A stretch of 41,224 bases of DNA from Octopus bimaculoides (lineage: Eukaryota), in NCBI RefSeq assembly GCF_001194135.2, contig NC_069010.1:127654-168877 (forward strand), in the 5' to 3' direction. The notes beneath the pieces are model-generated. The model had not been told where the DNA came from, searched no databases, and was given only the letters and a program-made list of their open reading frames with translations. Below, piece by piece: positions 4,978 to 35,293 of the stretch; positions within the stretch are counted from its first letter, which is position 1, and each line of letters opens with the position of its first letter. The position numbers and the translations under genes are program-made.

Positions 4978-5123
4978 ATGTCTGCTGTGTAAAAAGAAAG
5001 AACCTATAGTGGAGTTCCAACCATGTGAACACACTGTTATATGCAGAAATTGCTATAAAAATGAGAATGAGCTTAAAACTTGTCCCAAGTGTCAACGAGC
5101 TATAGAAACATGTAGTATACCTG
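4978..5123 (+). CDS. Internal exon encoding a RING-HC (C3HC4) zinc finger; intact copy A (phase 2 in, phase 1 out)
   Basis: Acceptor ttctgttttgttccacag| and donor G|gtaaga. Translation CLLCKKKEPIVEFQPCEHTVICRNCYKNENELKTCPKCQRAIETCSIP gives C-x2-C-x11-C-x-H-x3-C-x2-C-x9-C-x2-C. The F.PC.H..C..C spacing is typical of IAP/MIB/MDM2-type RINGs. Confidence 0.88.
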
Positions 5124-6382
5124 GTAAGAATACAATTTAATGCTCTGTCTGTTTGATTCATTGGCTTTACGATGGTGAATAATGTACTTTATATTGTTGT
5201 GTAGACCCAGGTCTGTCATAAGTTGGCACATTTATGATAAAAGGTGTTCTAGATGTCTTCTCTNNNNNNNNNNCACATTTATGATAAAAGGTGTTCTAGA
5301 TGTCTTCTCTTTGTGATACTATATCAATCCCCCCATCCACTAAATTTTGTCTTCATCCAAGTACAAGGTGTGCTATACTTCAAGAGGTTGCTAAGAGAAA
5401 TATCAATAATATTCCTGGCTTTTATCAGTAAATATTAACTTTTTAATGCCAATTGTGAGTGATTAGAGGTGATTAATGATTTATCAGTATCTTGTGAATC
5501 TGATAGCTATAGACAAAGGTAGTTACAAGAANNNNNNNNNNNNNNNNNNNNNNNNNNNNNNNNNNNNNNNNNNNNNNNNNNNNNNNNNNNNNNNNNNNNN
5601 NNNNNNNNNNNNNNNNNNNNNNNNNNNNNNNNNNNNNNNNNNNNNNNNNNNNNNNNNNNNNNNNNNNNNNNNNNNNNNNNNNNNNNNNNNNNNNNNNNNN
5701 NNNNNNNNNNNNNNNNNNNNNNNNNNNNNNNNNNNNNNNNNNNNNNNNNNNNNNNNNNNNNNNNNNNNNNNNNNNNNNNNNNNNNNNNNATAATTTGTCA
5801 TCTTATGAAGAGCTCCAATAATTACAGTAGTCTGATGTTTGATATGAAATATTTAATTAACACTTACTACAAAGTTTCAATAACATTTACCATCCATATT
5901 TATACTCATTCTTATTGGATTTTAGATTATATTAATGTTAATGCAGGCACAATTTTCTGNNNNNNNNNNNNNNNNNNNNNNNNNNNNNNNNNNNNNNNNN
6001 NNNNNNNNNNNNNNNNNNNNNNNNNNNNNNNNNNNNNNNNNNNNAAAAGAAATTATTGTTAGTATTTGGTACTGGACCTGGTACCATTTTTCTGCGATTC
6101 CTCATGGAACTACCATGATATCAACTGTTTTCAGATACAATCTATATAGATAACTAGCACTCCATCGGTTAGGATGATGAAAGATCCAGTTTTCCTATCA
6201 ATAAAACAGCCTGTTAATGAAATTAACATGAAAGTGGCTGAGTACTCCGAAGACGTGAGTACACTAAATGTAGTTCCCAGGAAGATTCATCATAACACAG
6301 AAGGTGAAAAGGCTGGCCCTTTAAAATATAAGTAGATCTTGTTTTAATCAACTGAATGGATAGCAGCAATATGAAAGAAAGT

Positions 6383-6587
6383 CAGATAATATACAATCTA
6401 TATAGATATCATTATAATGGTGGTCACTCACATATACATTTATCAGATTATATACAAACTATATATTTATAATTACAATGATGGTAACATATCCCTTTGC
6501 CAGATTATATATAATTTATATAGATATCATTATAATGATGGTCACATATCCCTTTGCCAGATTATATATAATCTCTATAGATATCAT
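6383..6587. repeat. 57-bp minisatellite, short allele (~3.6 units), copy A
   Basis: Unit ATCCCTTTGCCAGATTATATATAATCTATATAGATATCATTATAATGATGGTCACAT; same flanks as the long array in copy B. Confidence 0.9.
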
Positions 6588-6594
6588 TTTGGAA

Positions 6595-7075
6595 ACATCA
6601 TCAAAGTATATCTCCCCATGCTCTAGCAAACATGGATTCAGCTAAACTAGAGAGAGCTCCCATTCACAATCTCAACTCAGAATGCAGTGTCAGATTAATC
6701 AACTACAAGTTGAGTTGTTGAGGTACCAAGCAATTCTAATTATCATCTTCTTCTTAAGTTAAACCCAAGTCGGTTGATCTGATTCGAGAGTGCGGGGCAT
6801 TCAGGCAATATAACAAACTTATCAAACCTGGGGGTGAGTGGATACATGACAAACAACTGAATTGAATAATTTGATATATCATGATGTACCGCTTACTAGC
6901 ATCATTGAGGCAGATGCCTATTTCATGGCAGATATACCAGATAAAGAAAAGGTCGGCAGGCTGTATTTAGAAATCATATATGCCAGTGACACTGCTGTTT
7001 CTGTGCCAAAAACCAGCAAGATTNNNNNNNNNNCATCTCAAACAACGTTTATCAAAATCTGTCAATGGAACAATA
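6595..7075 (+). pseudogene. Decayed transposase-like coding remnant, unclassified (also at 29190-29655)
   Basis: Reads SPHALANMDSAKLERAPIHNLNSECSVRLINYKLS*GTKQF...QVKPKSVDLIR with stops. From recall it resembles AP(I/V)HNL..ERSVG.INY segments of transposon-derived proteins in marine invertebrates; not verified by search. Confidence 0.4.
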
Positions 7076-7851
7076 AGTAATAAATTTCAAAATTTACTTG
7101 AATAATGTGAGTTGCAAGACAGACTTAAGCCTTATTGATTTCAGTCATGCATTGGATGACTTGGTGTGAGGTTCTGAAGCCATAAAGGTTGTCAAAGTAT
7201 TATTTATCATATACATTTCAGAACTTCGGAAATGTTTTGTCTTCTGTAAAATTAAATTACTTAATTATTTGTCATTAAACTGCTTATTCCACATTCAATT
7301 CGAGTTCTTTGACGTCAAAAGCATATATAAAGACATCTCATATGACATTCTTGGTAACAACTACTGATTTTGTGAAAAAGATGTGTATCTTGGTCGCCCT
7401 CTTAAATTTGTGCCATATTGTAAAATCAAATTGTAAGACTAATACTATTTTTGGATTCAGCGTATTAAAAGAACCCATGCTAAGCTAAAATCTATATGCA
7501 TAAATGTGTAATGGTGTCTGTCTGTGTGTGTGTTTGGGGTTAATCTAACTCCTCTCGAATCGTCCAACCGATTTTAATGATTTTTGGTACATAGATAGAT
7601 TACATGCCCTGAATTTCAGATAAGGCCAGAATTTTTCGAAAACTCGATAATGCTCAGTTGGCATCGATTNNNNNNNNNNCTCGATAATGCTCAGTTGGCA
7701 TCGATTTTTGTGAGCTCAATCGGGCGTTTCAATGGAAATACCCATAACGATGTTATTATTTTTTGCAGCTTTTGCATTTTTTGGTCCGATTTTGATGAAA
7801 ATCAATGAGTGAGCGAGGCTCATGGCAGTGAGTTGATTTCAGTATATAGTG

Positions 7852-7920
7852 CTAGTCCAACCCATGCCAGCATAGAAAGCTGACGTTAAACGATGATGAT
7901 GATGATGATGATGATGAGTA
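7852..7920 (+). mobile_element. 5'-truncated SINE 3' end with (GAT)n tail, present only in copy A
   Basis: CATGCCAGCATAGAAAGCTGACGTTAAACGATGATGAT matches the tail of the SINE at 22091-22423. The empty site atatagtg|ttgataaaaa is seen in copy B at ~30381. Confidence 0.85.
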
Positions 7921-8174
7921 TTGATAAAAAATCGATAATTGCACCTGATCAGTGGTTATATAAAATCAATAGGCTTTTTGCATGCAAATACCCATAGGGA
8001 TTTTATTTTTGGCCATAACTTTTATATTTTTCNNNNNNNNNNTAATGAAATTTGAGATGTAGGTAAATTTTGTGGTGGGAGAGACGGTAAAGATGTTTAT
8101 TTAATTCAAAAGGGCTTTAAAAGGGGACAAATGCAAATAAGCATTTCCTTAGAGACATTCTTATTGATTTTGTA

Positions 8175-8236
8175 ATGCTGGCATCAACCAATGGACATGA
8201 ACTGTACAGTTCATGTCCATTAGTTGATGCCAGCAT
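8175..8236. repeat. 62-bp loopless palindrome (1 mismatch), copy A only
   Basis: ATGCTGGCATCAACCAATGGACATGAACTGT|ACAGTTCATGTCCATTAGTTGATGCCAGCAT; copy B (~30655-30685) has only the right arm. Confidence 0.85.
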
Positions 8237-10128
8237 GAAGAGTTGACAAAAATCNNNNNNNNNNTCCATTAGTTGATGCCAGCATGAAGAGTTGACAAAA
8301 ATCGATAATTGCACGTGAGTGGGAATTTTAAGAAATCAATAGGCTTTTTGTATGCAATTCCACATTGGATTAATATCTTATGCTGTAACTTTTACAGAAT
8401 TCATCTGATTTTGATGAAATTTAACTTTTAGGAAAAGTTTATCATTGGAGTCATGTAATAGAATTAAAATTAAACTGGTGAAAGGCAGAAATCGTCAAAA
8501 TTCATTCCCAATAAAATAATGAACTGATTTTGAAGAAAATTCACCCATGAGTAGAGTTAAGCACTTCGACATATGAAGCATCGATTATTCATATTGGGAT
8601 TTAAGATGGGATATTTTCATGTAAATGGTCACGTGGATTCTATTTTATGACATAAATTTAACACTTTCTTTCGGATTTTGCTGAGATTGAACACACTGAT
8701 TAATTTTGTACAGAGAGTGGCATTAAGAGGAGAGAAATAAACAAACGTCACTCTCAACAGTTGGAGGTACACCCAAAAGTTTGACTGTGATTTCAGATGG
8801 TCCATTATGATGAAATATGTTGAAAGTGTTAACTGGGTAAAATCCCTGCTGAACCAGATATAACATCTTAATGGGTANNNNNNNNNNNNNNNNNNNNNNN
8901 NNNNNNNNNNNNNNNNNNNNNNNNNNNNNNNNNNNNNNNNNNNNNNNNNNNNNNNNNNNNNNNNNNNNNNNNNNNNNNNNNNNNNNNNNNNNNNNNNNNN
9001 NNNNNNNNNNNNNNNNNNNNNNNNNNNNNNNNNNNNNNNNNNNNNNNNNNNNNNNNNNNNNNNNNNNNNNNNNNNNNNNNNNNNNNNNNNNNNNNNNNNG
9101 TTTATATCATTGTTTTGTGACCCTAGGCACAACTTTTGAGAAGCAATAAAAGATTAAAATAACATTCTCCATACCTGTACATGCATATCTAGTTTATCTT
9201 TAGTGCATTTTAGCCTCATGGTTTCAACATCGACAGACAGNNNNNNNNNNNNNNNNNNNNNNNNNNNNNNNNNNNNNNNNNNNNNNNNNNNNNNNNNNNN
9301 NNNNNNNNNNNNNTCTCGTTTCTTCTTTCAATCCATTTGATATTTCTTTGTATGTTACAACACTTTTTCTGTAGATCTTCAAACAGGGCTAGCAAACCTT
9401 CCTTCTTCTTGGGTCTGGTCAGCTTTCCACTGCTTTTCTAAGTCCTTCTTCTCCCTTCTTAACTGATGCATCTTTTTTTTCTCACCTACTTTCGTCAGAC
9501 TTAGCAGATAACTGCTTCTTGTTACCCTCCATTACATCAAATAACNNNNNNNNNNNNNNNNNNNNNNNNNNNNNNNNNNNNNNNNNNNNNNNNNNNNNNN
9601 NNNNNNNNNNNNNNNNNNNNNNNNNNNNNNNNNNNNNNNNNNNNNNNNNNNNNNNNNNNNNNNNNNNNNNNNNNNNNNNNNNNNNNNNNNNNNNNNNNNN
9701 NNNNNNNNNNNNNNNNNNNNNNNNNNNNNNNNNNNNNNNNNNNNNNNNNNNNNNNNNNNNNNNAAGTATTTATCTGTCTACTGCACTTTGACTCTTAGGG
9801 TGACTTTCTTCATGTTTGATGGTCAAATGACTTACACTGCTTCAATTTCTCCAAATAATTCTTGCCTTGATGGATCTTCAATCCCACTTAGGATTGTCTG
9901 CATCCTGAACCACATCCAGTACCTTCTGTATATAGACCAGTCTTATTTCTGAGCTCATGTCTGTATTCTCTTCAATGACCACAGTAGAAAGTATAGAAAT
10001 ATTGACCAAAACCATAGTGGTCATTAGTTAACCATTGATGATAACCATTATGATATCTCGTAATAATAGAATATTGATTATTAGCAGAAATAATGATACC
10101 ATACTGCAAAGAGAAATATTTATTTCAG

Positions 10129-10200
10129 TGGATCGACATTCAGGGAAGAAAGAAGTCCAGACAACAGAACATCCTTCAGAAAGTAAACTACCGTCAGATG
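10129..10200 (+). CDS. 72-nt symmetric phase-1 linker exon, copy A
   Basis: Acceptor tatttatttcag| and donor G|gtgagt. Open in phase 1: (V)DRHSGKKEVQTTEHPSESKLPSD(G). The phase matches the RING donor, and splice sites and frame are kept in copy B. Confidence 0.75.
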
Positions 10201-11398
10201 GTGAGTATAAAATAACAATTATTAATTGATTTCTGTAAAATTTAGCTACACATGTGTTTTTTTTTNNNNNNNNNNNNNNNNNNNNNNNNNNNNNNNNNNN
10301 NNNNNNNNNNNNNNNNNNNNNNNNNNNNNNNNNNNNNNNNNNNNNNNNNNNNNNNNNNNNNNNNNNNNNNNNNNNNNNNNNNNNNNNNNNNNNNNNNNNN
10401 NNNNNNNNNNNNNNNNNNNNNNNNNNNNNNNNNNNNNNNNNNNNNNNNNNNNNNNNNNNNNNNNNNNNNNNNNNNNNNNNNNNNNNNNNNNNNNNNNNNN
10501 NNNNNNNNNNNNNNNNNNNNNNNNNNNNNNNNNNNNNNNNNNNNNNNNNNNNNNNNNNNNNNNNNNNNNNNNNNNNNNNNNNNNNNNNNNNNNNNNNNNN
10601 NNNNNNNNNNNNNNNNNNNNNNNNNNNNNNNNNNNNNNNNNNNNNNNNNNNNNNNNNNNNNNNNNNNNNNNNNNNNNNNNNNNNNNNNNNNNNNNNNNNN
10701 NNNNNNNNNNNNNNNNNNNNNNNNNNNNNNNNNNNNNNNNNNNNNNNNNNNNNNNNNNNNNNNNNNNNNNNNNNNNNNNNNNNNNNNNACAATGTTTTTG
10801 TTTGTTTTACATTTTTCTGATAGCTTATTGTTGTTGTTCAGCCATATGCCATATTCTGGCATATGAAGACATCCAAATGTCTTCAGCTATTTTTCGACTC
10901 AGGGAATATNNNNNNNNNNNNNNNNNNNNNNNNNNNNNNNNNNNNNNNNNNNNNNNNNNNNNNNNNNNNNNNNNNNNNNNNNNNNNNNNNNNNNNNNNNN
11001 NNNNNNNNNNNNNNNNNNNNNNNNNNNNNNNNNNNNNNNNNNNNNNNNNNNNNNNNNNNNNNNNNNNNNNNNNNNNNNNNNNNNNNNNNNNNNNNNNNNN
11101 NNNNNNNNNNNNNNNNNNNNNNNNNNNNNNNNNNNNNNNNNNNNNNNNNNNNNNNNNNNNNTAAGACAGGAACGACAAAAGCAGAAGGGCATTATTATCA
11201 AGTTGTAATAACTAAATAAGATAATGGCTACAACGATAGGATTATGTAGAATGTGTTACAAGAAGAAAGAGGTTTAGGAAGGTTACTTTATTTTGTTNNN
11301 NNNNNNNNNNNNNNNNNNNNNNNNNNNNNNNNNNNNNNNNNNNNNNNNNNNNNNNNNNNNNNNNNNNNNNNNNNNNNNNNNNNNNNNNNNNNNNNNNT

Positions 11399-11488
11399 AA
11401 CCATGCGCGGAACCTTGGGCAAGTTTTTTCTACTATAGCCTCTGGCCGACCAAAGCCTTGTGAGAGAATTGGGTAGAAGGAGACTAAA
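11399..11488 (+). mobile_element. SINE fragment (same family as 32908-33254, opposite orientation)
   Basis: ACCTTGGGCAAG...CTACTATAGCCTCTGGCCGACCAAAGCCTTGTGAG matches the reverse complement of ~33150-33230. Confidence 0.75.
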
Positions 11489-12017
11489 ATAATGAGACCC
11501 CATGAGTGTCAAGATGAGATTTTGGGGGATTAAAACAATGAAACATTGGCACTCACATAAAGTGCACCTCTGATTTTGACCACCAATACCTGCAGATAAG
11601 TTCTGCTCTTTGTAGATCTTAACATGTCTTTTGAGGCCTCGGTTGGATTTGCAAATCTTCTAGCATACACTGCGATTTGAGGCCAGCCAAAGGCAGACAT
11701 CGTCTATCGCAGACATGGTCTGTCACAGACTGTACACACAGAAAGGTCATTGCCATTCAAATGATTTGTAAAGAGCCAGTTTTGTATTCCTATTTATATG
11801 TCGCTCAACACTCGAAGAATAAAAGTGAAATTATTAAAAGTGAAAGTATTACACGTAAAAGTATTAAAAGTGAAACTAATTTTAACTTACTCCGTCGAAA
11901 GTTTCACATTTATTCTTCTAGTTTTGAGAAATAATACGGAACCAGTGCTAATGTTTCATTGTTTTAATCCAAAAAAATTACATGTTGACACTCATGGGGC
12001 ATCATATTATTACCGTG
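11489..12017. mobile_element. Inverted-repeat (MITE/TIR-like) element carrying a captured LINE segment
   Basis: ~11489-11553 (CCCCATGAGTGTCAAGATGAGATTTTTGGGGGATTAAAACAATGAAACATTGGCACT) is the reverse complement of ~11944-12005 (AGTGCTAATGTTTCATTGTTTTAATCCAAAAAAATTACATGTTGACACTCATGGGG). The right end ...TTACCGTG is followed by TA; the left end looks truncated against the SINE. Confidence 0.6.
11550..11805. repeat. 256-bp exact direct repeat (partner 12312-12567, offset 762)
   Basis: Base-for-base identical, from CACTCACATAAAG to TATATGTCGCT; also seen as the shared ORF starts at 11677 and 12439. Confidence 0.9.
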
Positions 12018-12085
12018 TAAAATTTGATCTGATTTGGTTGAGCCGTTTGAGAGTGTATTGGGAACAGACAGGGATACAAGGATTT

Positions 12086-12096
12086 ATATGTATATA

Positions 12097-12184
<88 letters not shown>

Positions 12185-12202
12185 TATATACATATACACA
12201 TA
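12086..12202. repeat. (TA)n microsatellite at the 3' end of the RTE LINE
   Basis: Direct; source of the YIYIY ORFs. Confidence 0.95.
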
Positions 12203-12204
12203 TG

Positions 12205-15200
12205 GTAGTTTTCTATTCCTTATACAGAGTTTGACCACTTCCTGTACCTCCACGTTAGCACCATCATGGCGTCTGGTGTGACTTTTTAAACCAGACGATG
12301 TTCTTAAAAGACACTCACATAAAGTGCACCTCTGATTTTGACCACCAATACCTGCAGATAAGTTCTGCTCTTTGTAGATCTTAACATGTCTTTTGAGGCC
12401 TCGGTTGGATTTGCAAATCTTCTAGCATACACTGCGATTTGAGGCCAGCCAAAGGCAGACATCGTCTATCGCAGACATGGTCTGTCACAGACTGTACACA
12501 CAGAAAGGTCATTGCCATTCAAATGATTTGTAAAGAGCCAGTTTTGTATTCCTATTTATATGTCGCTGGCACCAAATGCGTGACTCCAAGCCACCAAATG
12601 TCTTTTCTCCCCTTTGAATTCGCAGGTGTATTTCTGTATCATGTTTTCCATCATTTTGAACAGAGCTTCCAAGGTAGACGAACGAATCTACAATCTCAAG
12701 TAACTTTCCCTTAACATGCATTTTAGCGGGGTTACTAACAACAACACACGCAGGTTGATGTATTAACGCTATCTTTTTCAAGTTGATGGTCAAGCCAAAA
12801 CCATCACAAGCTGAGTCAAATGCAGATACAAGAGATTGCAGACATGTTTCAGAATGAAATCTTCAGCGTACAAAAGTTTCCTAATGAGTGAAGCAAAACC
12901 GTTCGATTTGAATTTCAGTCTCCTCAGATTAAAAACATTCCCTGTTGTCCGATATTTTATGTAACTACTCTCCTCAGAGTTTTGAAAACGTGTGACAACA
13001 CAACAGTAAAGTATATTGCAAAGAGGGTGAGTGTATCAAGGTCTCCTTGCTTTACTCCATTTCCACAGCAAAAGATTCAGAGAGCCTAGCACCAAAATTA
13101 ACGCTAGCTTTCATATCTTAATACAAAGCCCTATTTTCCTTGGAATTAGCCACAGAGCATTTCGATTAACAGCATCGAATGCTTTTCTCAAATCAACAAA
13201 GCAATGGTAGAGAGCAAAATTCTGTTCAATGCACTTTTCTTGTAATTGTCTGACAGTAAAGATACAATCAGCCGTGCCCCTGGAGGAACGAAAACCACAC
13301 TGAGACTCAGACACTATATTTGGAACTATAAAGGTATTTAAACGTTCTAACAAAATGCGGGCAAGAACCTTTCCAACCACAGACAAAAGCGAAATCCCAC
13401 GAAAATTACCCCACAGATGCTTTGACCCCGATTTATACAAGGAGACTAAAATGGCATCATTCCAGTCTTGAGGCACTTTCTCTGTTCTCCAACAATGACA
13501 AAATATATTTCAAATATTTTGTCACCCTCATATTTCAAGACTTCTGCACAGATTCCATCAGACCCTGGAGACTTATTGTTATTCAGCTTATTTACTGCTA
13601 AATAAATGTCAGAATTGGTTCAAATGCCATCTCTTCTATAACTGGAAGGTGTTCAATTTTTTCTATCGTCCTCATGTCAATGGATAATGGTTTATTCAAA
13701 AGTGCAGAAAAATATTCTACCCAACGCGTATGAATAGAAACGGTGTCAGTCAGAAGAAAACGTCTATTTGCTGTTCTCACTGGAGCTACTGAGGAAAACT
13801 TAGGGCCATATATCTCCTTAACAAATGAGTACAAACTCTTGGCATAATTTCTATCAGCTGCTTCTTGTACCCGTTTTGCTCTATCATTCCACCATATCTG
13901 TTGAATTTTCTCTAGATCAGACTGCACTTTCCTTTTCAGTTTTCTGTAAGCTTCGTTTGAGTTGGAGTTCATAGACTGAGAAAGAAGTGTATTGCCTGCC
14001 TAAGTCTTGTTTTTCTAAAAGTAGATCATGAATTTCTGCTGATCTATCTGAGAACCAGTCACTGGATTTATGAGATTTAAATTCCACTGACGAACCTGCA
14101 GCCTGAAATACTTTTGTTTTGAAATCTTCGCATAGATTGTTTCGGTCAAGATTGATAGTTTCTATAGCATTGTGGAACCTTTTCAACTTGCTTGAAAATT
14201 TAAAGTTTGCAACATTTAACTTTTTGGGTACCTTAGGACCAGATGATGATCAGTCCAGCTCTCTGCCTCTCTCATAACACGAACGCTAGAAACGTTTTCC
14301 GTATCACGTGTCCTGATCAGAATATAATCTACCAGATGCCAGTGCTTAGATCTTGGGTGGGTGCATCCAGGTGGTTTGATATTTATTTTTCTGCTTAAAC
14401 AGAGTGTTGGTGACAAACAGAATATTCTCAGTACAAAACGTCAAAAGAGATACTCCATTGTTATTACATTTTCTAATCCCATATCGGCCTAAAACAGGCC
14501 ATGAAACATAGTCTTTTCCAACTCTTGCAGTGAAATCTCCTGGTATGACCAACTTGTCAAAGATTGGTACTTTCCTCAATAATCAAGCTAGATCGTGAAA
14601 AACTGTCCTACAGTTTCATTGGAATGGGACATTGTTGGTGCATAAATACTGCCAACGGTAAGAAATCTATCTTTCGTCAGTTTAATACGGCATGACATGA
14701 TCCGCTCAGATATACCACTCGGAAGCTCTGCAATGGAGGATACTAATGTATTCTTGAGAGCAAACCCAACACCAGATTCTCTACGGTGACCCTTTGGTAG
14801 GCCTCTCTAAAAGTAGTATGTCTATAAGTAGGTTCATTTACTTGACCTTCATCAGAGAGATGAGTTTCAGAGAGCACAACTATGTCAAGGGAATATTCCT
14901 TGAGCTCACAAGCAATAAGTGCAGTACGCCTTCCTGGCCTCTTGTTGATATCATTAAGAAGTGTGCACACATTCAAACAACCAAAATTCAAATGTTGTTT
15001 ATTTTTACTTTTTCTTGAAGATTGTTTGGCCACAGTGGCAGGATTACGACCGAGTCCAGCCTGTGATACACTGGGACACCTGCCGAGCCGTACCTGTTGT
15101 CTTGACCTTCCCAAGCCTTTTTTGTCATTTACTGAATCTGTTTGAGACATTCTAGAGTAAGTTACAACTGCATTTTTAGGTTTCTGCCAACCAACCAATT

Positions 15201-15480
15201 GAATGATTTTACCAAGATTTGGACTACAGGAAGTACCTGTGAAGATGAATAATTTTCGGAGGACGTAGCTTGCACTGCACTACCCCACCTATTGGCCAAA
15301 GAAGACGTTCGCTGGTGTGACATGAAAAATTGACAATACCAGGAAGTTCCAAAGCCTCAGGTTTTATTTCGGAGATTTCATTCTTCTGTGTAGATTACCA
15401 ACCAAGGGTAAAGAGCTTCTACCTGCTCATGAGGTAAGCTATCCCATTCCAGACACCGAACCGATACTCAGACAGTTTAT
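12205..15480 (-). mobile_element. Near full-length decayed RTE-type LINE (AP endonuclease + RT + C-terminal C2H2 finger)
   Basis: EN: LNFGCLNVCTLL, DIVVLSETHL, GDFTARVG, TNTLFKQK...TTWMHP, HWHLVDYIL, TDHHLV. RT: PQDWNDAILVSLYK, NFRGISLLSVVGKVLARILLERL, ESQCGFRSSRGTAD, FVDLRKAFDAV, GVKQGD, YAED (12859-12870), FVYLGS. C-terminus [21 protein letters not shown]. Many frameshifts; 5' limit approximate. Confidence 0.92.
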
Positions 15481-15539
15481 AAAGTGATCAAATATCACTC
15501 CGGTGACCGACTCGGAGTAGCTCATTCATAAAAAAAAGA

Positions 15540-15755
15540 AAGGTAAGATATGTGATTTGCAAATGTAAATAAAAATTATATATAAATATAAAAGCATAAA
15601 AGATATGCAATACATATAAATACATATATAAAAGTAAAAATATACATATATATATACAAAAAAATTTTAAAGATATGATGTGTGAATAAAGAATTACATA
15701 TAAATAATATTGTATAAAGGAAAGTAAAACATATGCAAATACAAGATATAAAATA

Positions 15756-15791
<36 letters not shown>

Positions 15792-15820
15792 ATATGCACA
15801 TAAAAAAGATATATACATAT
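15540..15820. repeat. AT-rich low-complexity / degenerate (TA)n tract
   Basis: Direct; source of the spurious ORFs 15488-15799 and 15576-15857. Confidence 0.85.
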
Positions 15821-17710: not shown

Positions 17711-18036
17711 TGATATATATGTGTTTATTTATACATGTACACATATTGTCACTTGTTTCTTTGTATATTAATAGTGGGGATGAATAACTGCTATCTCTAG
17801 CAGGCATCACATACTGAGGACAGGTAAGCACCCAGAAACCAGCCTGTTCTTCTGGCCTTGCCATGCTGGAGGGGAGTGGTTTGCTCCCTCACTCACAATA
17901 TATCAAGCATTTTAATACTCGAACTGTTTTTTAACATTTTTTATTATTCTCAAAGACTTTTGATAATCTTTTTCTAAAAAAGTGAAATCGGTTAAGTAAA
18001 TAAATATCTTTAAAATAAGTGCATTTTCAAACCTTC

Positions 18037-18074
<38 letters not shown>

Positions 18075-18075
<1 letters not shown>

Positions 18076-22090: not shown

Positions 22091-22423
22091 TACTGGCACT
22101 TGTGCCGGTGGCACGTAAAAAGACATTCGAGCAAGGTCATTGCCAGTGCTGCTAGACTGGCTCCTGTGCAGGTGGCACATGAAATACACCATTTTGAGTG
22201 TGGCCGTTGGCAGTACCCGCCTGACTGGCCTTCATGCCGGTGGCACATAAAAGCACCCACTACACTCTCGGAGTGGTTGGCGTTGGGAAGGGCATCCAGC
22301 TGTAGAAACTCTGCCAAATCAGATTGGAGCCTGGTGTAACCATCTGGTTCGCCAGTCCTCAGTCAAATCGTCCAACACATGCTAGCATGGAAAGCGGACG
22401 TTAAACGATGATGATGATGATGA
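22091..22423 (+). mobile_element. SINE-like interspersed repeat with (GAT)n tail
   Basis: Internal repeats of GCCGGTGGCAC(G/A)TAAAA; ends CATGCTAGCATGGAAAGCGGACGTTAAACGATGATGAT, recalled as an abundant octopus repeat; the same tail occurs at 7852-7920. Confidence 0.8.
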
Positions 22424-24053
22424 TATATATATGAAACATATGAAGCCCCGAACTTATCTACTCCATTCCTTAACCCTTCTATTCTTATTCGCTCACCCAG
22501 GAACCCTGGTCATTTACCGTGAAATATAAAAATATTTTTTTCTACTTATCATACTTTGATACAGAAAAAATAACAAACCTCTGCCTCAGTAAACCACTAT
22601 TGTTCTTGAGAGATTTTTTTTCTTTTCACGTTTACTACAGATTGCTTGAAACGAACTTTCTACACCTCAGTCCTTGGATCTTACATTTATATATGTGCAT
22701 GTTAGTGTGTGTGTGTGTGTGTGTGTGAATGGTATTGCTTCAACATCTAACCATCTATAGGTCTGATGTGTGACTACAGATGTGTGACTTCATCTCAGAC
22801 AGTTTGATGATCATTTCAGTGTTGATATAATATTTTCTGTGGTGAGAACAAGTTACTCTGGCAGTCAAATGTTCGTCTCCTTCACTTCTGGAATTGTCTA
22901 TCAGACTAACAGCTTGAACAATTTCTCACCTACAATGCGTTGATGTGCTGCTTCAGCTGTGACATTGATTCTTACTTTCTTGACATCACCTTCATCATCC
23001 CAAAATGTTTCTTTATTAATTATGGAAACATTATTCATATGTTTGGCTATGTCTGTGTGGTGTTGCTTTTCTTATGTCTGAAGAAATGTCTGTGTTTCAG
23101 CCGGTCTCTCTTACTTCTGATATAACATACATGGTCTGTTGTCATGTTGTTGTGTTATATTTATATGTACAATACTCTCCCATAAATATTTCTCTTGCTA
23201 TGGCCAGTTGGTTTTATCGAGCCCCATGTAGAGATAGGTTCTTGTTGTTTTGTGGTTTGGGGTTTTATTTTTGTGATATTTGTTTCTTTATATTTCCTAT
23301 TTTTGACTTGATTCTATGATTTTTTAATATTTTGTTTATTGAATAATTTGTGATATTGTGTTTGACAAGTGAATATTTACGCATTAAGTATCAATAAACT
23401 TGATGCTAATCAATAAGGTCAGTTCTGTTGAATATTCTGATCATATATTTAAGATATTATCTTAATGCAGAAAATAAAGTAGAAACAAATGAAAAATGGA
23501 AATAGACTAAACTTAAGAACTTAAGACCATGAAGAAACTCAATACTGTGTTATCAGTTTAATCACTGGATATTCAAACTATGCGTAAATGTAGTTGAATT
23601 TGTGTGTAATTTGGGGCATCTGTAATGTATATTTGTGTAATATATTGTATTCATCATTTTATATTTTATCATTTTCAGTTCTGCAAAATGCTTAAATTGA
23701 AAAAAGGTGAGAGGCTATCTGGCATAACCGTTGCCATTTATCTATGTCATTCGAAAGGAAACTTTCAACATTAAAACAAATGTAATAAGACCCCAGTAGA
23801 TCTCATTGAAAATTCAGAGTTTAAAAAGAAAATATAAGAGCTTTTCCCATCGTTGTTTGGCAAAGACAATGTAAATCAGTGAATTTTCTATTTTTTATAT
23901 AACCATGTTTATATGTATCGTGTTGTGTTAATACTACCAATAAATTATACTGTCACTAGTGTCTTCACCAAAATCTACACAACAATAGTAAGAACAACAA
24001 ACAGAAAATACATTTGTTAGCGGGTCAAACAAAGAACACTTTTGTTCAGAGGA

Positions 24054-24151
24054 AATTAGCTCAATACTAGAATTGAAGAATATTTCTGGAACATAATGTG
24101 TACACAAAATATATTCCAGAAATATACCTCAATTCTAGTATTGAGCTAATT
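24054..24151. repeat. Foldback hairpin: 38-bp arms (2 mismatches), 22-nt spacer
   Basis: AATTAGCTCAATACTAGAATTGAAGAATATTTCTGGAA (24054-24091) pairs with TTCCAGAAATATACCTCAATTCTAGTATTGAGCTAATT (24114-24151). The left arm is also at 4624-4661, followed by an N gap. Confidence 0.9.
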
Positions 24152-24417
24152 ACAAACCAATTTTTGTGACATATCAAAGTCAAAAAATATATTTAACAGT
24201 ATGTATATGAATGCAACACACACATGTGTGAGCATAGCATTCATACACACACACACACACACATCTGCATTTATGTTATTGGTTAAAGAATTTTTTTATG
24301 TACTCTTGCTGGTTCCTGTAGTGTCTCGTGATATTTTGTGCTCTAAACATGTACTCAATCCAATATTTGTTATAAACGAATGTTATCGGTGGGATGTGTT
24401 TCTGTTTTGTTCCACAG

Positions 24418-24560
24418 ATGTCTGCTGTGTGAAAAGAGTGAACCTATAATGGAGTTCCAACCATGTGGACACACTGTTATATGCAGAAATTGCTATTAAA
24501 ATCATAAGCCTAATTCTTGTCCCAAGTGTCAACAAGATATAGCAAAATATAGTATACCTG
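24418..24560 (+). pseudogene. Duplicated RING-HC exon, copy B, with an in-frame stop (TAA 24497-24499)
   Basis: Same acceptor; donor G|gtatga. CLLCEKSEPIMEFQPCGHTVICRNCY*NHKPNSCPKCQQDIAKYSIP; all eight zinc ligands retained; one codon shorter than copy A. Confidence 0.85.
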
Positions 24561-26001
24561 GTATGAATACAATTTAATGATCTGTCTGTTTGTCACATTG
24601 GCTTTACAACGGTGAATAATGTACTTTATATTGTTGTTTAGACCCAGGTTTGTCATAAGTTGGCACATTTATGATAAAAGGTGTTCTAGATGTCTTCTCT
24701 TTGTGATACTATACCAATCACACCATCCACTAAATTTTGTCTTTATCCAAGTACAAGGTGTGCTATACTTCAAGAGGTTGCTGTCTGCAAAAAGAAGACT
24801 TGTGTGGGATACTGGAAGTTAAACAGTGACTAAGAGAAATATCAATAATATTCCTGACTTTTATCAGTAAATATTAACTTTTTAATGTTAATTGCGAATG
24901 ATTAGAGGTGATCAATGATGTATCAGTAACTTGTGAATCTGATAGCTAAAGACAAAGGTAGTTACAAGAACATTAATTTTTGGTAAAATAGGAGAGTCAA
25001 TGAGGAAATCTCAAATGAGAGATTAAGGAACAACATTAGAGACTTCGATTGTTAATTAGGTGTTTTGTGTTGCTATGAATATTTATTTAGTGAAAGGTGT
25101 CATTGATTATTTCAACATATTTTGAAAAGTTGTCCTCCAGAAATTCTCCATAATTTGTCATGTTATGAAGAGCTCCAATAATTACAGTAGTCTGATGTTT
25201 GATATGAAATGTTGTCCCTTGTGGTATGTACCCAGAATATCCCAGATTAGAATATGTATTCTTGTAATAAATAAAAAGAAAATTACAAAATTCACTCAAA
25301 CAATATTAATCATTCAATTATTTTTTATTGAATGTTAAATTAGTATTGAACTGTTGAATGTGTGTTTATGTTTAAACGATGTATTTATATTCACGTTTAA
25401 AATAGACTTCTAGAAACAAAATATGAGTTCCAAATGTAAACTGAACACACAACGCTTTGTTTGTAACTATATTTAATTAACGCTTACTACAAAGTTTCAT
25501 TAACATTTATCATCCATATTTCTAATCACTCTTATTGGATTTTAGATTATATTAATGTCAATGCAGGCACAATTTTCTGTGTATTTTACCTTTTTGTTTC
25601 AGCTCTGAATTGATTCTTATTTTTAAATTAGATCACGGAACCTGGTCATTGTTTTTGACTGATAAACGAAATTATTGTTTGTATTTGGTACTGGACCTAG
25701 TACCATTTTTCTGCAATTCCTCATGGAACTAGCATTATTTCAACTGTTCTCAGATACAATCTATATCGATAACTAGCACTCCATCGGTTAGGATAATGAG
25801 TGAACCAGTTTTCCAATCAATAAAACAACCTGCTAATGAAATTAATGTGAAAGTGGCTGAGTACTCCAAAGATGTGAGTACACTAAATGTAGTTCTCAGG
25901 AAGATTCTGCATAGCACAGGAGGTGAAAAGGCTGGCCCTTTGAAATATAAGTAGAACTTATTTTCATCAACTGAGTGGATAGAAGCAATATGAAATAAAG
26001 T

Positions 26002-28073
26002 CAGATAATATACAATCTATATAGATATCATTATAATGGGGGTCACATATACAGTTATCAGATTATATACAAACAATATATTTTTAATTACAATGATGGT
26101 AACATATCACTTTGTCAGGTTATATATATTCTATATAGATATCATTATAATGATGGTCACCTATCCCTTTGTCATGTTATATACAATCTATATAGATATC
26201 TTTATAACGATGATCACATATCCACTTGTCAGGTTATATACAATCTATATAGATATCATTATAATAATGGTCACATATCTCTTTACCAGATTATATATAA
26301 TCTATATAGATATCATTATAATAATGGTCACACATCCCTTTGCCAGATTATATACAATCTATATAGATATCATTATACTGATGGTCACATATCTCTTAGC
26401 CAGATTATATCCAATCTATATAGATATCATTATGTTGATGGTCAGATATCCCTTTGCAAGATTATATATAATCTATATAGATATCATTATATTGATGGTC
26501 ACATATCCCTTCCCCAGATTTTATATAATCTATATAGATATCATTATATTGATGGTCACATATCCCTTTGCCAGATTATATATAATCTATATAGATATCA
26601 TTACAATGATAGTCATATATCCCTTTGCCAGATTATATATAATCTGTATAGATATCATTATAATGATGGTCACCTATCCCTTTGCCAGATTATATACAAT
26701 CTATATAGATATCTTTATAATGATGGTCAGATATCCCTTTGTCATGTTATATACAATCTGTATAGATATCTTTATAACGATGATCACATATCCACTTGTC
26801 AGGGTATATAGAATCTATATAGATATCATTATAATGATGGTGACATATCTCTTTGCCAGATTATATATAATCTATATAGATATCATTATACTGATGGTCA
26901 CATATCCCTTTGTCAGATTATATACAATGTATATAGATATCATTATAATGATGGTCATATATCCCTTTGCCAGATTATATATAATCTATATAGATATCAT
27001 TATAATGATGGTCACATATCTCTTTGCCAGATTATATAAAATCTATATAGATATCATTATACTGATGGTCACATATCCCTTTGTCAGATTATATACAATG
27101 TATATAGATATCATTATAATCATGGTCATATATCCCTTTGCCAGATTATATATAATCTATATAGATATCATTATAATGATGGTCACATATCTCTTTGCCA
27201 GATTATATATAATCTATATAGATATCATTATAATAATGGTCACATATCCCTTTGCCAGATTATATACAATCTATATAGATATCATTATACTGATGGTCAT
27301 ATATCCCTTTGCCAGATTATATAAAATCTATATAGATATCATTATACTGATGGTCATATATCCCTTTGCCAGATTATATATAATCTATATAGATATCATT
27401 ATACTGATGGTCATATATCCTTTTGCAAGATTATATACAATCTATATAGATATCATTATATTGATGGTCACACAACCCTTTGCAAGATTATATACAATTT
27501 ATATAAATATCATTATACTGATGGTCACATATCCCTTTGTAAGATTATATATAATCTGTATAGATATCATTATATTGATGGTCAAATATCCCTTTGCCAG
27601 ATTATATAAAATCTATATAGATATCATTATAATGATGGTCAGATATCCCTTTGTCAGATTATATACAATGTATATAGATATCATTATAATGATGGTCATA
27701 TATCCCTTTGCCAGATCATATATAATCTATATAGATATCATTATAATGATGGTCACATATCTCTTTGCCAGATTATATATAATCTATATAGATATCATTA
27801 TAATAATGGTCACATATCCCTTTGCCAGATTATATACAATCTATATAGATATCATTATATTGATGGTCAAATATCCCTTTGCCAGATTATATAAAATCTA
27901 TATAGATATCATTATACTGATGGTCACATATCCCTTTGCAAGATTATATACAATCTATATAGATATCATTATATTGATGGTTACATATCCCTTTGCCAGA
28001 TTATATATAATCTATATAATCTATATAGATATCATTATATTGATGGTCACATATCCCTTTGCCAGATTATATA
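26002..28073. repeat. 57-bp minisatellite, long allele (~36 units before the Helitron)
   Basis: 57-bp period, which is the 19-aa period YPFARLYIIYIDIIIMMVT of ORF 26036-28231; variant units recur at 171-bp and 570-bp offsets. Confidence 0.97.
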
Positions 28074-29056
28074 TCTATATATATAAAAATGAGAATGTGT
28101 GTCTGTCTGTCTGTCTGTCTGTCTATGTGTGTGAATCCCTAAAACTCGAGAACTACGCAACCAATTTCATTCAAATTTTACACATGCCTTACTTAGGGTT
28201 CCAGTTGTGTTTTAGTAAAAAAAAATATTAACTTCTTGCAGAGTTCGAGCACACGGCAACATAATATCTCCTCCACTATTAAAGTATTACGTGTCAAAAG
28301 TGAAACAAAAACACTCATGTCAAATACTTTCACTTTAAAAATGAAACTATTCCACTAACTGAAACAATCACATTTCNNNNNNNNNNNGAATGGATCTTTA
28401 TGAAATTTGGAAATTATATTCTTTGCATAACGGCCATAACTCCCATGAAAATTCATATATTTTTGATGTTGATGAAATATTAACCCGAACATAACAGATG
28501 AGCATTTTTTAGAAAATGATGTCACACGTTATCGAGGCTACCATTCTTTCTGGATGTGCAAAAGGGGATGACGTCTTTATTCCAAGAATTCCTCTTACTC
28601 TATCAGGAGCAGACATTCCTTTTACATTTAGAAGACTACAATTCCCCCTTCGTGTGACTTTTGCCATGTCCATAAACAAACCTCAGGGTCAAATACTGTC
28701 TGTAGCTGGTCTTCTCTTGGAAGAGCCCTGCTTCTCACATGGCCAACTGTATGTTGGCTGCTCAAGAGTGGGCATCAAAAAAAAACCTATTTGTATATGC
28801 TCCACAAGGGTAAACAAGGAACATTGTTTACAACGAGGTGTTATAATCACAACAGCAAGAAAGTATGTACATGATCACCTTCTTTTACGAAACTTCATTG
28901 ACTTTCATATATTTATATTGATATACATATACATACGTGTGTTTGGGTGCGTGTGTGTATATACATCTCTATATATAAAGATGATGCGTAGTCTGGACGG
29001 CGTTTTTAGATTTCATTATTCTCTTTAACCCGGGCAACGCCGGGTATTTCTGCTAG
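28074..29056 (+). mobile_element. Young non-autonomous Helitron (983 bp) inserted in the minisatellite
   Basis: 5' TC (28074-28075) and 3' hairpin ACCCGG-GCAACG-CCGGGT (29028-29045) followed by CTAG (29053-29056). Inserted between A28073 and T29057 with no target-site duplication; removing it restores the unit CCAGATTATATA^TAATCTATATAG. Confidence 0.95.
28516..28790 (+). pseudogene. Helitron RepHel Pif1-helicase C-terminal fragment
   Basis: HVIEATILSGCAKGDDVFIPRIPL...FTFRRLQFPLRVTFAMSINKPQGQ...FSHGQLYVGCSRV corresponds to Pif1 motifs V/VI. Confidence 0.92.
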
Positions 29057-29189
29057 TAATCTATATAGATATCATTACAATGATAGTCATATATCCCTTT
29101 GCCAGATTATATATAATCTGTTTAGATATCATTATATTGATGGTCACATATCCCTTTGCCAGATTATATATAATCTTTATAGATATCAT
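29057..29189. repeat. 57-bp minisatellite, ~2.3 units continuing after the Helitron
   Basis: Same unit, in register with the array before the insertion. Confidence 0.95.
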
Positions 29190-30062
29190 TTTGGAAACAT
29201 CATCAAAGCGTCTCCCCATGCTCTAGCAAACATGGATTCGGCTAAACTAGAGAGAGCTCCCATTCACAATCACAACTCAGAATGCAGTGTCGGATTAATC
29301 AATTACAAGTTGAGTCGTTGAGGTGGCAAGCAATTCAAATGACCATCTTCGTCTCAAGTTAAACCCAAGTCGGCTGATCTGATTCGAGTGTCCGGGGCAT
29401 TCAGGTAATGTAACAAACTTATCAAACCTGGGGGTGAGTGGATACATGACAAACAACTAAATTGGATAATTTGATATATCATGATGTACAACTTACTAGC
29501 ATCGTTGAGGCAGATGCCTATTTCATGGCAGATATACCAGATAAAGAAAAGAACAGCAGGCTGTATTTAGAAATGCCAATGACACTGCCGTTTCTGTGCC
29601 AAAAACAAGCAAGATTTCCATCTCAAACAACGTTTATCAAAATCTCGCAATGAAGCCATAAGTAATAAATTTCAAAATTTAATTGAATAATGTGAGTTGC
29701 AAGACAGACTTAAGACTTATTGATTTGAATCATACGTTGGATGACTTGGTCTGAGGTTCTGAATCCATAAAGGTTGTCAAAGTATTATTTATCATATAAC
29801 TTTGGGACTTCGGAAATGTTTTTCCTTCTGTAAAATTAAATTACTTAATTATTTGTCATTAAACTGTTTATTCCACATTCAATTCGAGTTCTTTGACTGC
29901 AAAAGCATATATAAAGACATATCATATGACATTCTTGGCAACAACTACTGATTTTGGGAAAAAGATGTGTATTTTGTTCTCCCTCTTGAATTTGTGCCAT
30001 ATTGTAAAACTAATACTATTTTTGGATTCAGCTTATTAAAAAAAAACCGTGCTAAGCTAAAG

Positions 30063-31376
30063 TCTATATGCATAAATGTGTAATGGAGTCTGTCTGTGTG
30101 TGAGTTTGGGGTTAATCTAACTTCTGTCACATCGTCCAACCAATTTTAATGATTTTTGGCACATAGATTACATACCCTGAATTTCAAATAATGCCAGAAT
30201 TTTTCGAAAACTCGATAATACTCATTTGGCATAGATTTTTGTGAGCTCAATCGGATGTTTGAATGGAAATACCCATAACGATGTTATTTTTTCCTGCAGC
30301 TTTTGCTTTTTGTTTGTCCAATTTTGATGAAAATTGATGAGTGATCGAAGCTCATGGCAGTGAGTTGATTTCAGTATATAGTGTTGATAAAAAATCGATA
30401 ATTGTGCCTGATCAGTGGTTATATAAAATCAATAGGCTTTTTGTATGCAAATACCCATAGGGATTTTATTTTTGGCTGTAACTTTTATATTTTTCATCCA
30501 ATTTTAATGAAATTTGAGATGTAGGTAAATTTTGTGGTAGGGGAGATGGTAAAGATGTTTATTTAATTCAAAAGGGCTTTAATAGGGCACAAATGCAAAT
30601 AAGTATTTCCTTAGAGACATTCTTATTGATTTTGTAGAAATTTTACACATGATTACAGTTCATGTCCATTAGTTGATGCTAGCATGAAGAGTTGACAAAA
30701 ACCAATAATTGCACATGAGTGGGGATTTTAAGAAATCAATAGGTTTTTTGTATGCAATTCCTCATAGGATTAATATCTTATGCTGTAACTTTTACAGAAT
30801 TCATCCGATTTTGATGAAATTTAACATTTAGGAAAAGTTTATCGTTGGAGTCATGTAGAATTAAAAGTAAACTGGTGAAAGGCAGAAATCGTCAACATTC
30901 ATTCACAATAAAATAATGAACTGATTTTGAAGAAAATTGACCCATGAGTAGAGTTAAGCACTTCGACATATGAAACATCGATTATTCATATAATGTATTG
31001 GGATTTAAAATGGGATATTTTCATGTAAATGGTCACGTGGATTCTATTGTATGACATAAATTTAACATTTTCCTTCGGATTTTGCTGAGATTGGACACAC
31101 TGATCAATTTTGTACAGAGGGTGGCATTAAGAGGAGAGAAATAAACGTTGCTCTCAACAGTTGGAGGTACACCCAAAAATTTGACTGTGATTTCAGATGG
31201 TCCATTATGATGAAATATGTTGAAAGCGTTAACTGGGTAAAATCCCTGCTAAACCAGATATACCATCTTAATGGGTAATAGTTGGTACGGGGAAAGTAGA
31301 AGATTTCAATACTAGGTCAGAGGTAGGCTTAACTTCAACACGGAAAACATGAGCAAATGCCAGGTCCAACAGCTAG
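30063..31376 (+). mobile_element. Old non-autonomous Helitron-like element, copy B
   Basis: 5' TCTATATGCATAAATG. The 3' end ACATGAGCAAATGCCAGGTCCAACAGCTAG|T looks like a degraded version of the young Helitron end ACCCGGGCAACGCCGGGTATTTCTGCTAG|T. It is shared with copy A, so it predates the duplication. Confidence 0.55.
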
Positions 31377-32507
31377 TAGTATATATTTACGTACACTATA
31401 AGGTTTTGGATTGATTAAATTAGTATTTACTTCTATATTTTCTAGGTTTCTAACTTCAAGCAGTATATACAGCTGGGTTGCCAAAATCGAAATCGAAAAA
31501 AAAAAAAAAACGTTTATATCATTGTTTTGTGACCCTAGGCACAACTTTTCAGAAGCAATAAAGGATTAAAATAACATCCTCCATACCTGTGCATGCGTAC
31601 CCAGTTTATCTTTAGTGCATTTTAGCCTCATGGTTTCAACATCGACAGACAGCATCCTCATGACTTCATAAGCAGTCTTGAGGAACTACTCTTTCATCCA
31701 TTTAATCTCGTTTCTTCTTTCAATCCATTTGATATTTCTTTGTATGTTACAACACATTTTCTGTAGATCTTCAAACAGGGCTAGCAAACCTTCCTTCTCC
31801 TTGGGTCTGGTCAGCTTTCCACTGCTTTTCTAAGTCCTTCTCCCTTCTTAACTGATGCATCTTTTTTTCTCTCCTACTTTCGCCAGACTTAGCAGATAAC
31901 TGCTTCTTGTTACCCTCCATTACATCAAATAACTCAACACTTATGTCGTAGATGGTGATTGCAAGCTTATTCAGCTTAACTCTTGTTTCCCCCATCCTTT
32001 TTATGGAGCATTTTGCATACTTTCCCTTTGAGGGACCTGTCACTAGCCTTATAATTTGCAGCTGACCACTAATTATTTCGTTTCTTTATCATCTCATCTA
32101 GCAAAGAGGCATCTTGACCTAAAGATCATGAAGGCGTTTCAGCTGAAGTATTTATCTGTCTACTGCACTTTGACTCTTAGGGTGACTTTCTTCATATTTG
32201 ATGGTCAAATGACCTACACTGCTTCAATTTCTCCAAATAATTCTTGCCTTGATGGATCTCCAATCCTACTTAGGATTGTCTGCACTCTGAACTACATCCA
32301 GTCTCTTCTGTATAACTTTAAACCAGTCTTATTTCTGAGCTCATGACTGTATCCTCTTCAATAACCACCTTAGAAAGTATAGAAATAATGACCAAAACCA
32401 TAGTGGTCACTAGTTAACCATCGATGATAAGATGTCTCATGTTAATAGAAGATAGATTATTAGCAGAAATAATGATATCATACTGCAACGAGAAATATTT
32501 ATTTCAG

Positions 32508-32579
32508 TGAATCCACATTCAGAGAACAAAGGAGTCCAGGCATCAGCACATCCTTCAGAAAGTAAACTACTGCCAGATG
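32508..32579 (+). CDS. 72-nt symmetric phase-1 linker exon, copy B
   Basis: Acceptor tatttatttcag| and donor G|gtgagt; open frame (V)NPHSENKGVQASAHPSESKLLPD(G). Confidence 0.72.
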
Positions 32580-35221: not shown

Positions 35222-35293
35222 AGAGTTTAAAGCTGAAGGAGAAGAATCTTGTGAGAGTGGTTGAGAGGTTAGGAAGTAATTGGTGGCAAGTGG
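35222..35293 (+). CDS. Death domain exon 1 (72 nt, phase 1-1)
   Basis: Acceptor atttatttcag| and donor G|gtgagt. (E)SLKLKEKNLVRVVERLGSNWWQV(G) has the L..LG..W..(L/V)G pattern of Death-domain helices 1-2 and joins in frame to 40565. Confidence 0.85.

Follow-up and report, generated by a model that had tools for sequence, protein, structure and literature searches.

The stretch of DNA analysed here (the window) comprises 41,224 nucleotides of the Octopus bimaculoides genome (RefSeq assembly GCF_001194135.2, contig NC_069010.1, positions 127,654 to 168,877 of the forward strand) and belongs to a gap-rich assembly, with 26 runs of N inside the window. It carries part of a gene for a predicted RING-type ubiquitin ligase, in which a block of three exons, hereafter pre-RING, RING and linker, is present twice on the plus strand as an upstream copy A and a downstream copy B, and the subject of this work is the excess of amino acid replacements that separates the two. 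The pre-RING exon of copy A (986..1161, 176 nt, splice phases 0 to 2) encodes FCKMLNLQKEERLSG...ELFPS, reaches 98% identity in tblastn and aligns with positions 20588-20763 of the Octopus sinensis locus L002. The RING exon (4978..5123, 146 nt, phases 2 to 1) specifies a C3HC4 RING of IAP type with all eight zinc ligands and is 100% identical to residues 57-104 of a 137-residue protein, P0001, recovered by an exhaustive HMMER search with this exon. The linker cassette exon (10129..10200, 72 nt, phases 1 to 1) has its O. sinensis homologue in the linker exon at L002 25497-25568 (VTPKSENKEVQTPAHPSESKVLPT). P0001 is RefSeq entry XP_014771821.2, named 'E3 ubiquitin-protein ligase MIB1 [Octopus bimaculoides]' and placed on CM046630.1 of GCA_001194135.2, and the exon sequences in the window match the genome record of this entry exactly; both P0001 and an older RefSeq model of the same locus (P0041, 353 aa) use exactly the three exons of copy A.

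Copy B contains counterparts of all three: a pre-RING pseudo-exon (23679..23854) with TAA codons at 23772-23774 and 23835-23837 and a donor converted by deletion from GTAAGT to GTTTGG, as seen when both copies are aligned with two O. sinensis loci; a RING pseudo-exon (24418..24560, 143 nt) in which all ligands are intact, a TAA (24497-24499) separates ligand 6 from ligand 7 and GTATGA replaces GTAAGA as the donor; and a linker exon (32508..32579, 72 nt), which is open and has intact splice sites. The three TAA codons (beginning at 23772, 23835 and 24497), of which a preliminary description of this sequence had noticed one, together with the two weakened donors make copy B a dead exon set, and it looks like a copy decaying from early on; it carries in addition an expanded satellite and a Helitron-like insert. 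Recoding of its TAA codons by adenosine-to-inosine editing was considered and dismissed, as six efficient edits would be needed and the donor lesions argue against use.

Two further exons on the same strand, located downstream of copy B, are predicted to complete the gene: the first half of a Death domain (DD1, 35222..35293, 72 nt, phases 1 to 1), matched in tblastn by the family proteins P0021 and P0022, and its second half (DD2, 40565..40773, phase 1 through to a TAA stop), 54% identical in tblastn to residues 540-600 of the O. sinensis protein P0040. Joined, they score 26.0 bits on the Pfam Death family against a cutoff of 22.6 (29.5 bits for P0022), and they are phase-compatible with each other and with the exit phase of the linker. 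The whole chain then reads pre-RING 0 to 2, RING 2 to 1, linker 1 to 1, DD1 1 to 1 and DD2 1 to stop, so that either block alone, A or B, can join the ankyrin exons to the Death-domain exons by phase, while both together shift the frame. XP_014771821.2 looks truncated, because it ends by read-through into the intron after linker A (GEYKITIIN and then a stop) and misses DD1 and DD2; the same GEYKI ending is common to several RefSeq isoforms of the family. The RING is internal and not extreme C-terminal: its exon, with exit phase 1, is followed by linker and Death-domain exons in the spliced RefSeq and O. sinensis models. A form with the RING exon as terminal exon, reading through into CPKCQRAIETCSIPGKNTI and a stop with a 15-residue tail of IAP-like length, was rejected as the main form, because the RefSeq and O. 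sinensis models splice the RING to the linker, the linker is conserved as coding sequence between species and no model uses the read-through.

Exons of the linker and DD1 type are all exactly 72 nt long with phases 1-1 (10129-10200, 32508-32579 and 35222-35293 in the window, L002 25497-25568, L004 19342-19413 and L005 10905-10976) and share a near-identical splice context, aaatatttatttcag before the exon and gtgagtata after it, with flanks 70-76% identical around otherwise unrelated exon bodies of about 40% identity. DD1 belongs to the same pattern, sharing splice context and flanks with the linker cassettes (70-76% identity) and only 40% of its body. These cassettes look like old tandem duplicates, the coding bodies of which would have diverged far faster than their flanks.

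The RING of copy A scores 31.2 bits on Pfam PF13920 (C3HC4_3, the IAP/MIB/MUL1 type; gathering cutoff 27); the ligand order C-x2-C...C-x-H-x3-C-x2-C...C-x2-C is kept in both A and B with eight zinc ligands each, and the nearest solved RINGs are those of cIAP1/2, MEX3C, MUL1 and XIAP. Family members found by HMMER and word-index searches are all from Octopus and bear MIB1/MIB2-like names in RefSeq; the word-index protein search gave no match with the spliced RING and linker peptide and, with P0001 as query, P0001 itself only. Their common architecture runs from ankyrin repeats through the pre-RING segment, one C3HC4_3 RING and at least one linker cassette to a Death domain. It is present in the O. 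sinensis proteins P0040 and P0038, with one RING set per locus, and the Pfam scan placed the ankyrin block upstream of the RING with 324 bits for Ank_2 in P0040 and 84 bits in P0041. The one further O. bimaculoides member found, P0022, is encoded on the same chromosome 5.1 Mb away and is not a neighbour. The Pfam scan matched P0040 and P0041 to ankyrin and RING families only, MIB/HERC2 and ZZ domains being absent, and BIR domains were absent from P0040, P0041 and P0022 in the same scan as well as from the precomputed Pfam lists of 19 family members. The lack of MIB/HERC2, ZZ and BIR domains implies that the family consists neither of true Mind bomb nor of IAP proteins. The octopus proteins resemble Mind bomb (MIB1/MIB2), after which RefSeq names them, in ankyrin repeats followed by a C3HC4_3 (PF13920) RING, but lack MIB/HERC2 and ZZ domains, possess one RING instead of two or three and continue after it with a linker and a Death domain; as far as domain content can tell, the MIB1 label is a name given for partial similarity and not family membership. 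With IAP/BIRC proteins they share the RING, cIAP1/2 and XIAP being among its closest solved structures, and the combination of a RING with a Death domain, but differ in the absence of BIR, in the internal and not C-terminal RING and in the ankyrin-based organization. Combinations of RING and Death domain are described for oyster IAPs, which underwent lineage-specific expansion (PMC8917759), and in the same comparison IAPs were least expanded in Octopus (PMC8917759). Literature searches returned no description of the octopus family considered here. Judged by exon content and homology, the locus is part of one gene in an octopus-specific family of putative ubiquitin ligases combining ankyrin repeats, a RING and a Death domain. 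The preliminary description had treated it as an immune arms-race gene; what speaks for such a role is the ankyrin-RING-Death architecture, from which we infer a possible link to immunity.

The duplicated unit, delimited by collinear self-BLAST chains, extends on the plus strand over 85..10861 in copy A, where it is fragmented by N-runs and includes a fragment of a long interspersed nuclear element (LINE) at about 1363-4796 that B lacks, and over 22757..33329 in copy B, which is contiguous except for a gap of 11 N. Along about 5 kb of alignable intron, 6.7% of positions are substituted between A and B, roughly a third of what separates the introns of O. bimaculoides and O. sinensis (about 20%). 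The O. sinensis genome has two whole-gene copies, L002 and L003 (CM016887.1, at 1.60 Mb and 9.31 Mb), which lie 7.7 Mb apart, are 2.0% diverged and contain a single set of pre-RING, RING and linker exons each. One exon set per O. sinensis locus implies that the internal duplication is specific to the O. bimaculoides lineage, and on these comparisons it is recent, inside the gene and later than the split from O. sinensis.

Codon alignment of A and B gave 16 substitutions in the RING exon and 10 in the linker, 26 in total, with not a single synonymous change, one 3-nt indel and one lysine codon turned into TAA in B; the changes fall on codon positions as 10/13/3 over 44 synonymous and 170 non-synonymous sites, and all eight zinc ligands are identical. 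In this part every change listed in the preliminary description was reproduced, together with its statement that the ligands are untouched. Its claim that all exonic substitutions between the copies are non-synonymous fails with the third, overlooked duplicated exon (986-1161 versus 23679-23854): among the 13 substitutions between the pre-RING exons there is one plainly synonymous change (GCT>GCC), and another counts as synonymous or not depending on the mutational path. The bias itself survives, the three exons together having 1.5 synonymous and 37.5 non-synonymous changes among 39 differences. For the RING exon, zero synonymous changes are found in the true reading frame only, the other five frames giving 1.5 to 6. 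An open frame that is likewise duplicated (6159-6335 versus 25778-25954) and had been offered as an internal control with 4 silent changes of 17 yields 4.5 of 17 on recalculation. It matches several O. sinensis places on both strands (e.g. L002 11760-11939, 9219-9081 and 12287-12121), and this scatter indicates part of a dispersed repeat and not a gene, still fair as a neutral control.

The silent fraction expected under neutrality amounts to 0.235-0.239 when the intron substitution spectrum is applied to these codons and to 0.251 when introns are read as pseudo-codons. With these values the probability of 0 silent changes among 26 is 5e-4 to 1e-3 (about 8e-4), matching the rough figure of 6e-4 proposed at first, and that of 2 or fewer among 39 in three exons is 2e-3; a Fisher test on Nei-Gojobori sites of RING and linker gives p=0.003. 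The two exons are also more divergent than their surroundings, with 26/215 (12.1%) versus 334/4995 (6.7%) in introns, a ratio of 1.8 (Fisher p=0.005), and each of them ranks within the highest 1.2% of equally long windows slid along the introns, intron divergence being approximately Poisson-homogeneous over 5 kb (mean 9.7 per 143 nt, standard deviation 3.1). The earlier contention that exons exceed introns in divergence therefore stands intron-wide, while its figures for immediate flanks (about 3-8%) do not, as 100-nt flanks differ by 6-10%. At replacement sites divergence reaches 15% against 6.7% in introns (Fisher p=1.5e-4). Pairwise likelihood-ratio tests, carried out with our own implementation of the GY94 F3x4 model and giving nominal, small-sample and post hoc values, reject equality of replacement and silent rates (omega, or dN/dS, of 1) for the A-B pair with p=0.0005 for RING and linker and p=0.001 for three exons. 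The replacement excess is statistically real at the 1e-3 level, all of these values being nominal and obtained for a pattern selected after the fact. CpG decay was examined as its mutational cause and rejected: CpG-containing codons of A (CGA, CGA, CCG) are derived gains, not losses, and base-specific intron rates still predict 24% silent changes.

To assign the changes to lineages, the 39 differences were polarised with the O. sinensis orthologues. Lineage A received 15 replacements and no silent change (2 in pre-RING, 6 in RING, 7 in linker), lineage B 16 replacements and 1-2 silent changes (10 of these changes in pre-RING; 7 replacements and no silent change in RING and linker), and 7 replacements with no silent change were not assignable to a lineage. 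A three-taxon branch model gave, again as nominal values, an unbounded omega for A, exceeding 1 at p=0.004, an omega of 4.9 for B (p=0.066) and 1.07 for the O. sinensis branch. Against a neutral expectation of 1.8, the linker of A accumulated 7 replacements (P=0.003), and the pre-RING exon of A is nearly unchanged on its own lineage. Diversifying selection on both copies, as initially suggested, is partly supported: dN/dS above 1 is nominally significant for the A-B pair and for the A branch, and not for B, the changes of which are compatible with neutral decay. Since the significant signal lies on the A branch and the B branch fits neutral decay, the data do not imply that B was expressed, contrary to the earlier view that it had been expressed before its stop arose. 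Between A and O. sinensis dS is about 0.23 and dN about 0.28, with omega of 1.1-1.2 by counting and 1.55 by maximum likelihood (p=0.18); the 16-18 silent differences among 88 separating the species are plentiful enough to show that there is no general block on silent change in this region. For the last ankyrin exon and DD2 omega is about 0.5. Between the O. sinensis copies L002 and L003 there are 7 replacements and no silent change in the three exons, whereas their ankyrin exons show 6 replacements next to 5 silent changes (Fisher p=0.04), which may be taken as a small independent echo of the same regional pattern. The RING loop that leads from ligand 6 to ligand 7 is hypervariable and aligns poorly. 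Its codons 90 and 91 carry three different bases in the three lineages.

The scenario that best accommodates these data begins with tandem duplication, after the split from O. sinensis, of a block of about 10.8 kb with the pre-RING, RING and linker exons inside the gene. The downstream block B then died, its substitutions resembling neutral decay, and the upstream block A, which is the one in the annotated mRNA, kept its pre-RING exon nearly unchanged. In the RING of A (the loop between ligands 6 and 7 and the stretch behind ligand 8), and most strongly in the linker of A, numerous amino acid changes but not one silent change accumulated, two to three times as fast as neutrality predicts. The scarcity of silent differences between A and B would then be the sum of three contributions: in A, protein change that is adaptive or, at the least, wholly free of constraint; in B, neutral decay, where three-quarters of changes are replacements anyway; and a chance shortage of silent changes. 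Gene structure, duplication, lesions of B, counts and test results are directly shown by the data; we infer selection rather than luck behind the excess in A, and positive selection on A appears the best single explanation for the replacement excess, although we would give it roughly an even chance. The signal is modest, post hoc and mainly on A.

A number of circumstances weigh against this interpretation. The signal is carried by 130 codons in two sequences, the pattern was singled out after the fact in a large scan, and the chi-square approximation underlying the likelihood-ratio tests is rough at such counts. Exact binomials for separate lineages are weak (P=0.016 for the 15:0 of A and P=0.06-0.16 for B). 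Silent sites are less diverged between A and B than introns (1.9% versus 6.7%, or 1.5 changes observed against 5.3 expected, P 0.03-0.10), and since selection on the protein cannot produce such a deficit, part of the absence of silent changes is luck. Polarisation within the RING loop is unreliable owing to the indel and three-state sites; at RING codon 86 (5057-5059 in A, 24497-24499 in B), for instance, the triplet reads AAA in A, TAA in B and TTA in O. sinensis, so that parsimony reconstructs a TAA ancestor. Omega between species, at 1.0-1.55, is not significantly above 1 and would fit a simply unconstrained region as well, which, by the criterion of the preliminary description itself, weakens a claim of dN/dS above 1 throughout the family. 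The region of copy A was assembled from many small contigs, and splice forms are predicted from gene models and phases.

The strongest rival is relaxed or neutral evolution of both copies combined with luck, which assumes little constraint beyond zinc ligands and treats 0/26, or 1.5/39, as a post hoc tail event of a scan over many windows; we regard it as a serious possibility, clearly less probable than selection on A. It agrees with a between-species omega of about 1 and the plentiful silent differences there (16-18 of 88), with the omega of 1.07 on the long branch and with the fact that neutrality of the B branch is not rejected, and the deficit of silent changes relative to introns is itself explicable only by chance or by odd constraint. 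The linker, moreover, looks like low-complexity and probably disordered spacer, and the bodies of the 72-nt cassettes have diverged beyond recognition between flanks that are still alignable. Luck would nevertheless have to supply nominal probabilities of 3e-4 to 2e-3 for the silent fraction, and neutrality predicts the intron rate, whereas replacement sites diverged more than twice as fast and both exons stand at the extreme of the intron windows. The restriction of the pattern to the true reading frame and the same direction of bias in the O. sinensis duplicate pair also speak for something other than chance.

Diversifying selection could also have acted on both copies while both were expressed, e.g. 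as mutually exclusive alternative RING-linker modules, with the stops of B arising later. The phases permit alternative use of A or B, as the entry phase of pre-RING is 0 and the exit phase of the linker is 1, the one required by DD1; the eight zinc ligands are intact in B, whereas 16 random changes would miss them with a chance of about 0.05; and the point estimate of omega for B, as well as the 7:0 ratio in its RING and linker, goes in the expected direction. What makes this unlikely is that omega of B does not significantly exceed 1 and its ratio of 16 to 1-2 fits neutrality, that five disabling lesions occur among about 18 changes of B, that ten of these changes hit the pre-RING segment which A conserves, a pattern of early decay, and that exons of B were encountered in no transcript or protein model found. 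A broader version, in which the RING-linker module is a recurrent target of adaptive diversification, tandem duplication created two mutually exclusive modules and selection drove them apart before one died, would together with the array of 72-nt cassettes amount to splice-based diversification of an innate-immune-type E3 ligase; it is, in our estimate, quite improbable.

Gene conversion would give the same appearance either by homogenising introns of A and B, so that exons look fast, or by overwriting exons of A or B from another family member. One intron block is indeed unusually similar (9314-9545, 1.8% divergence), the flanks of cassettes are alike among O. bimaculoides cassettes and not to the upstream flank of the O. 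sinensis orthologue, which hints at concerted evolution of flanks, and the states K64 and E76 of A, like its loop motif ENE, recur in a paralogue of P0021 type. Between K64 and E76, however, A lacks the P0021-type states at six differing codons, leaving no contiguous tract; import from a paralogue would have brought silent differences, of which A has none, and homogenisation of introns would neither agree with their near-Poisson divergence over 5 kb nor push exon dS under the intron value. Conversion is therefore very unlikely as the cause.

An artefact of assembly or annotation (mis-assembled haplotypes, chimeric contigs or unreal exons) is scarcely credible despite the 20 or more N-runs and several overlapping-contig joins in the region of copy A, as each exon lies within an uninterrupted contig, the sequences flanking gaps are collinear with B, a difference of 6.7% with distinct transposon and satellite content is far beyond allelic variation, the three exons are used by RefSeq models and have O. 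sinensis orthologues with conserved splice sites, and sequencing errors would ignore codon position. All N-runs in the span of the finding are intronic, the nearest exon being 140 nt away, and the sequences bordering each gap are matched in copy B, itself almost free of gaps, with the same order and orientation and at comparable distances (85 versus 84, 222 versus 234 and 218 versus 212). Three gaps of 10 N (5264-5273, 7670-7679 and 8255-8264) are flanked by 47, 37 and 13 extra duplicated bases relative to B and, by this pattern, are scaffolder joins of overlapping contig ends and not real sequence. Codon counts are untouched by gaps, because reading frames are set by splice phase and gaps only reduce the comparable intron.

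Positive selection on young RING ligases has precedents. Primate TRIM5 and TRIM22 are positively selected, tandemly duplicated E3 ligases of innate immunity, in which the selected surface is the substrate-binding B30.2/SPRY domain. The octopus gene resembles them in that part of a RING E3 ligase was duplicated recently, zinc ligands are conserved and dN/dS exceeds 1, and it differs in the placement of changes, which fall in the RING loop, the RING tail and the adjacent linker; we know of no pathogen linked to it. In Dscam1, tandem exon duplication gave rise to clusters of mutually exclusive exons, and the octopus locus likewise exhibits tandem duplication of an exon block within one gene with phases permitting only alternative use. 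It differs in that the block has three exons with introns of 4-5 kb and one copy disabled, and alternative use is here a prediction from the phases. If the excess in A is adaptive, these uncharacterised octopus-specific ankyrin-RING-Death ligases would be fast-evolving and would become candidate players in innate immunity or cell-death signalling of cephalopods, both little explored, with a variable surface unusual in being formed by RING loop, RING tail and linker rather than by a substrate-binding domain. If the pattern is due to chance, the locus would merely harbour a recent partial duplicate of the usual kind, in decay within an intron full of transposons. For annotation, the current RefSeq model looks truncated, and the locus also holds an unannotated dead block of exons.

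The copies are separated by a transposon-rich spacer (11399..22700), in which the list of open reading frames and Pfam matches to RVT_1 and Transposase_1 delineate LINE reverse-transcriptase frames on the minus strand (12512-15279 and 18517-20197) and a mariner transposase on the plus strand (16641-17505). Within this zone an exact direct repeat of 256 nt (11550-11805 and 12312-12567, 762 nt apart) covers an open reading frame with a C2H2-like motif; it could be transposon terminal repeats or a duplication made in assembly. The intron between RING and linker of copy B contains a tandem array of 57-bp units (25888..28100, about 38 units), represented in copy A by about 4 units at 6387-6686. This array gives a spurious open frame of 740 codons (26009-28228), and the same satellite occurs in O. 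sinensis near a neighbouring gene (L002 38086-38421). Beside it, in copy B only, a frame of 171 codons (28513-29025) resembles the C-terminal part of a Helitron/Pif1-type helicase by motif reading, with no Pfam match at E<=1.

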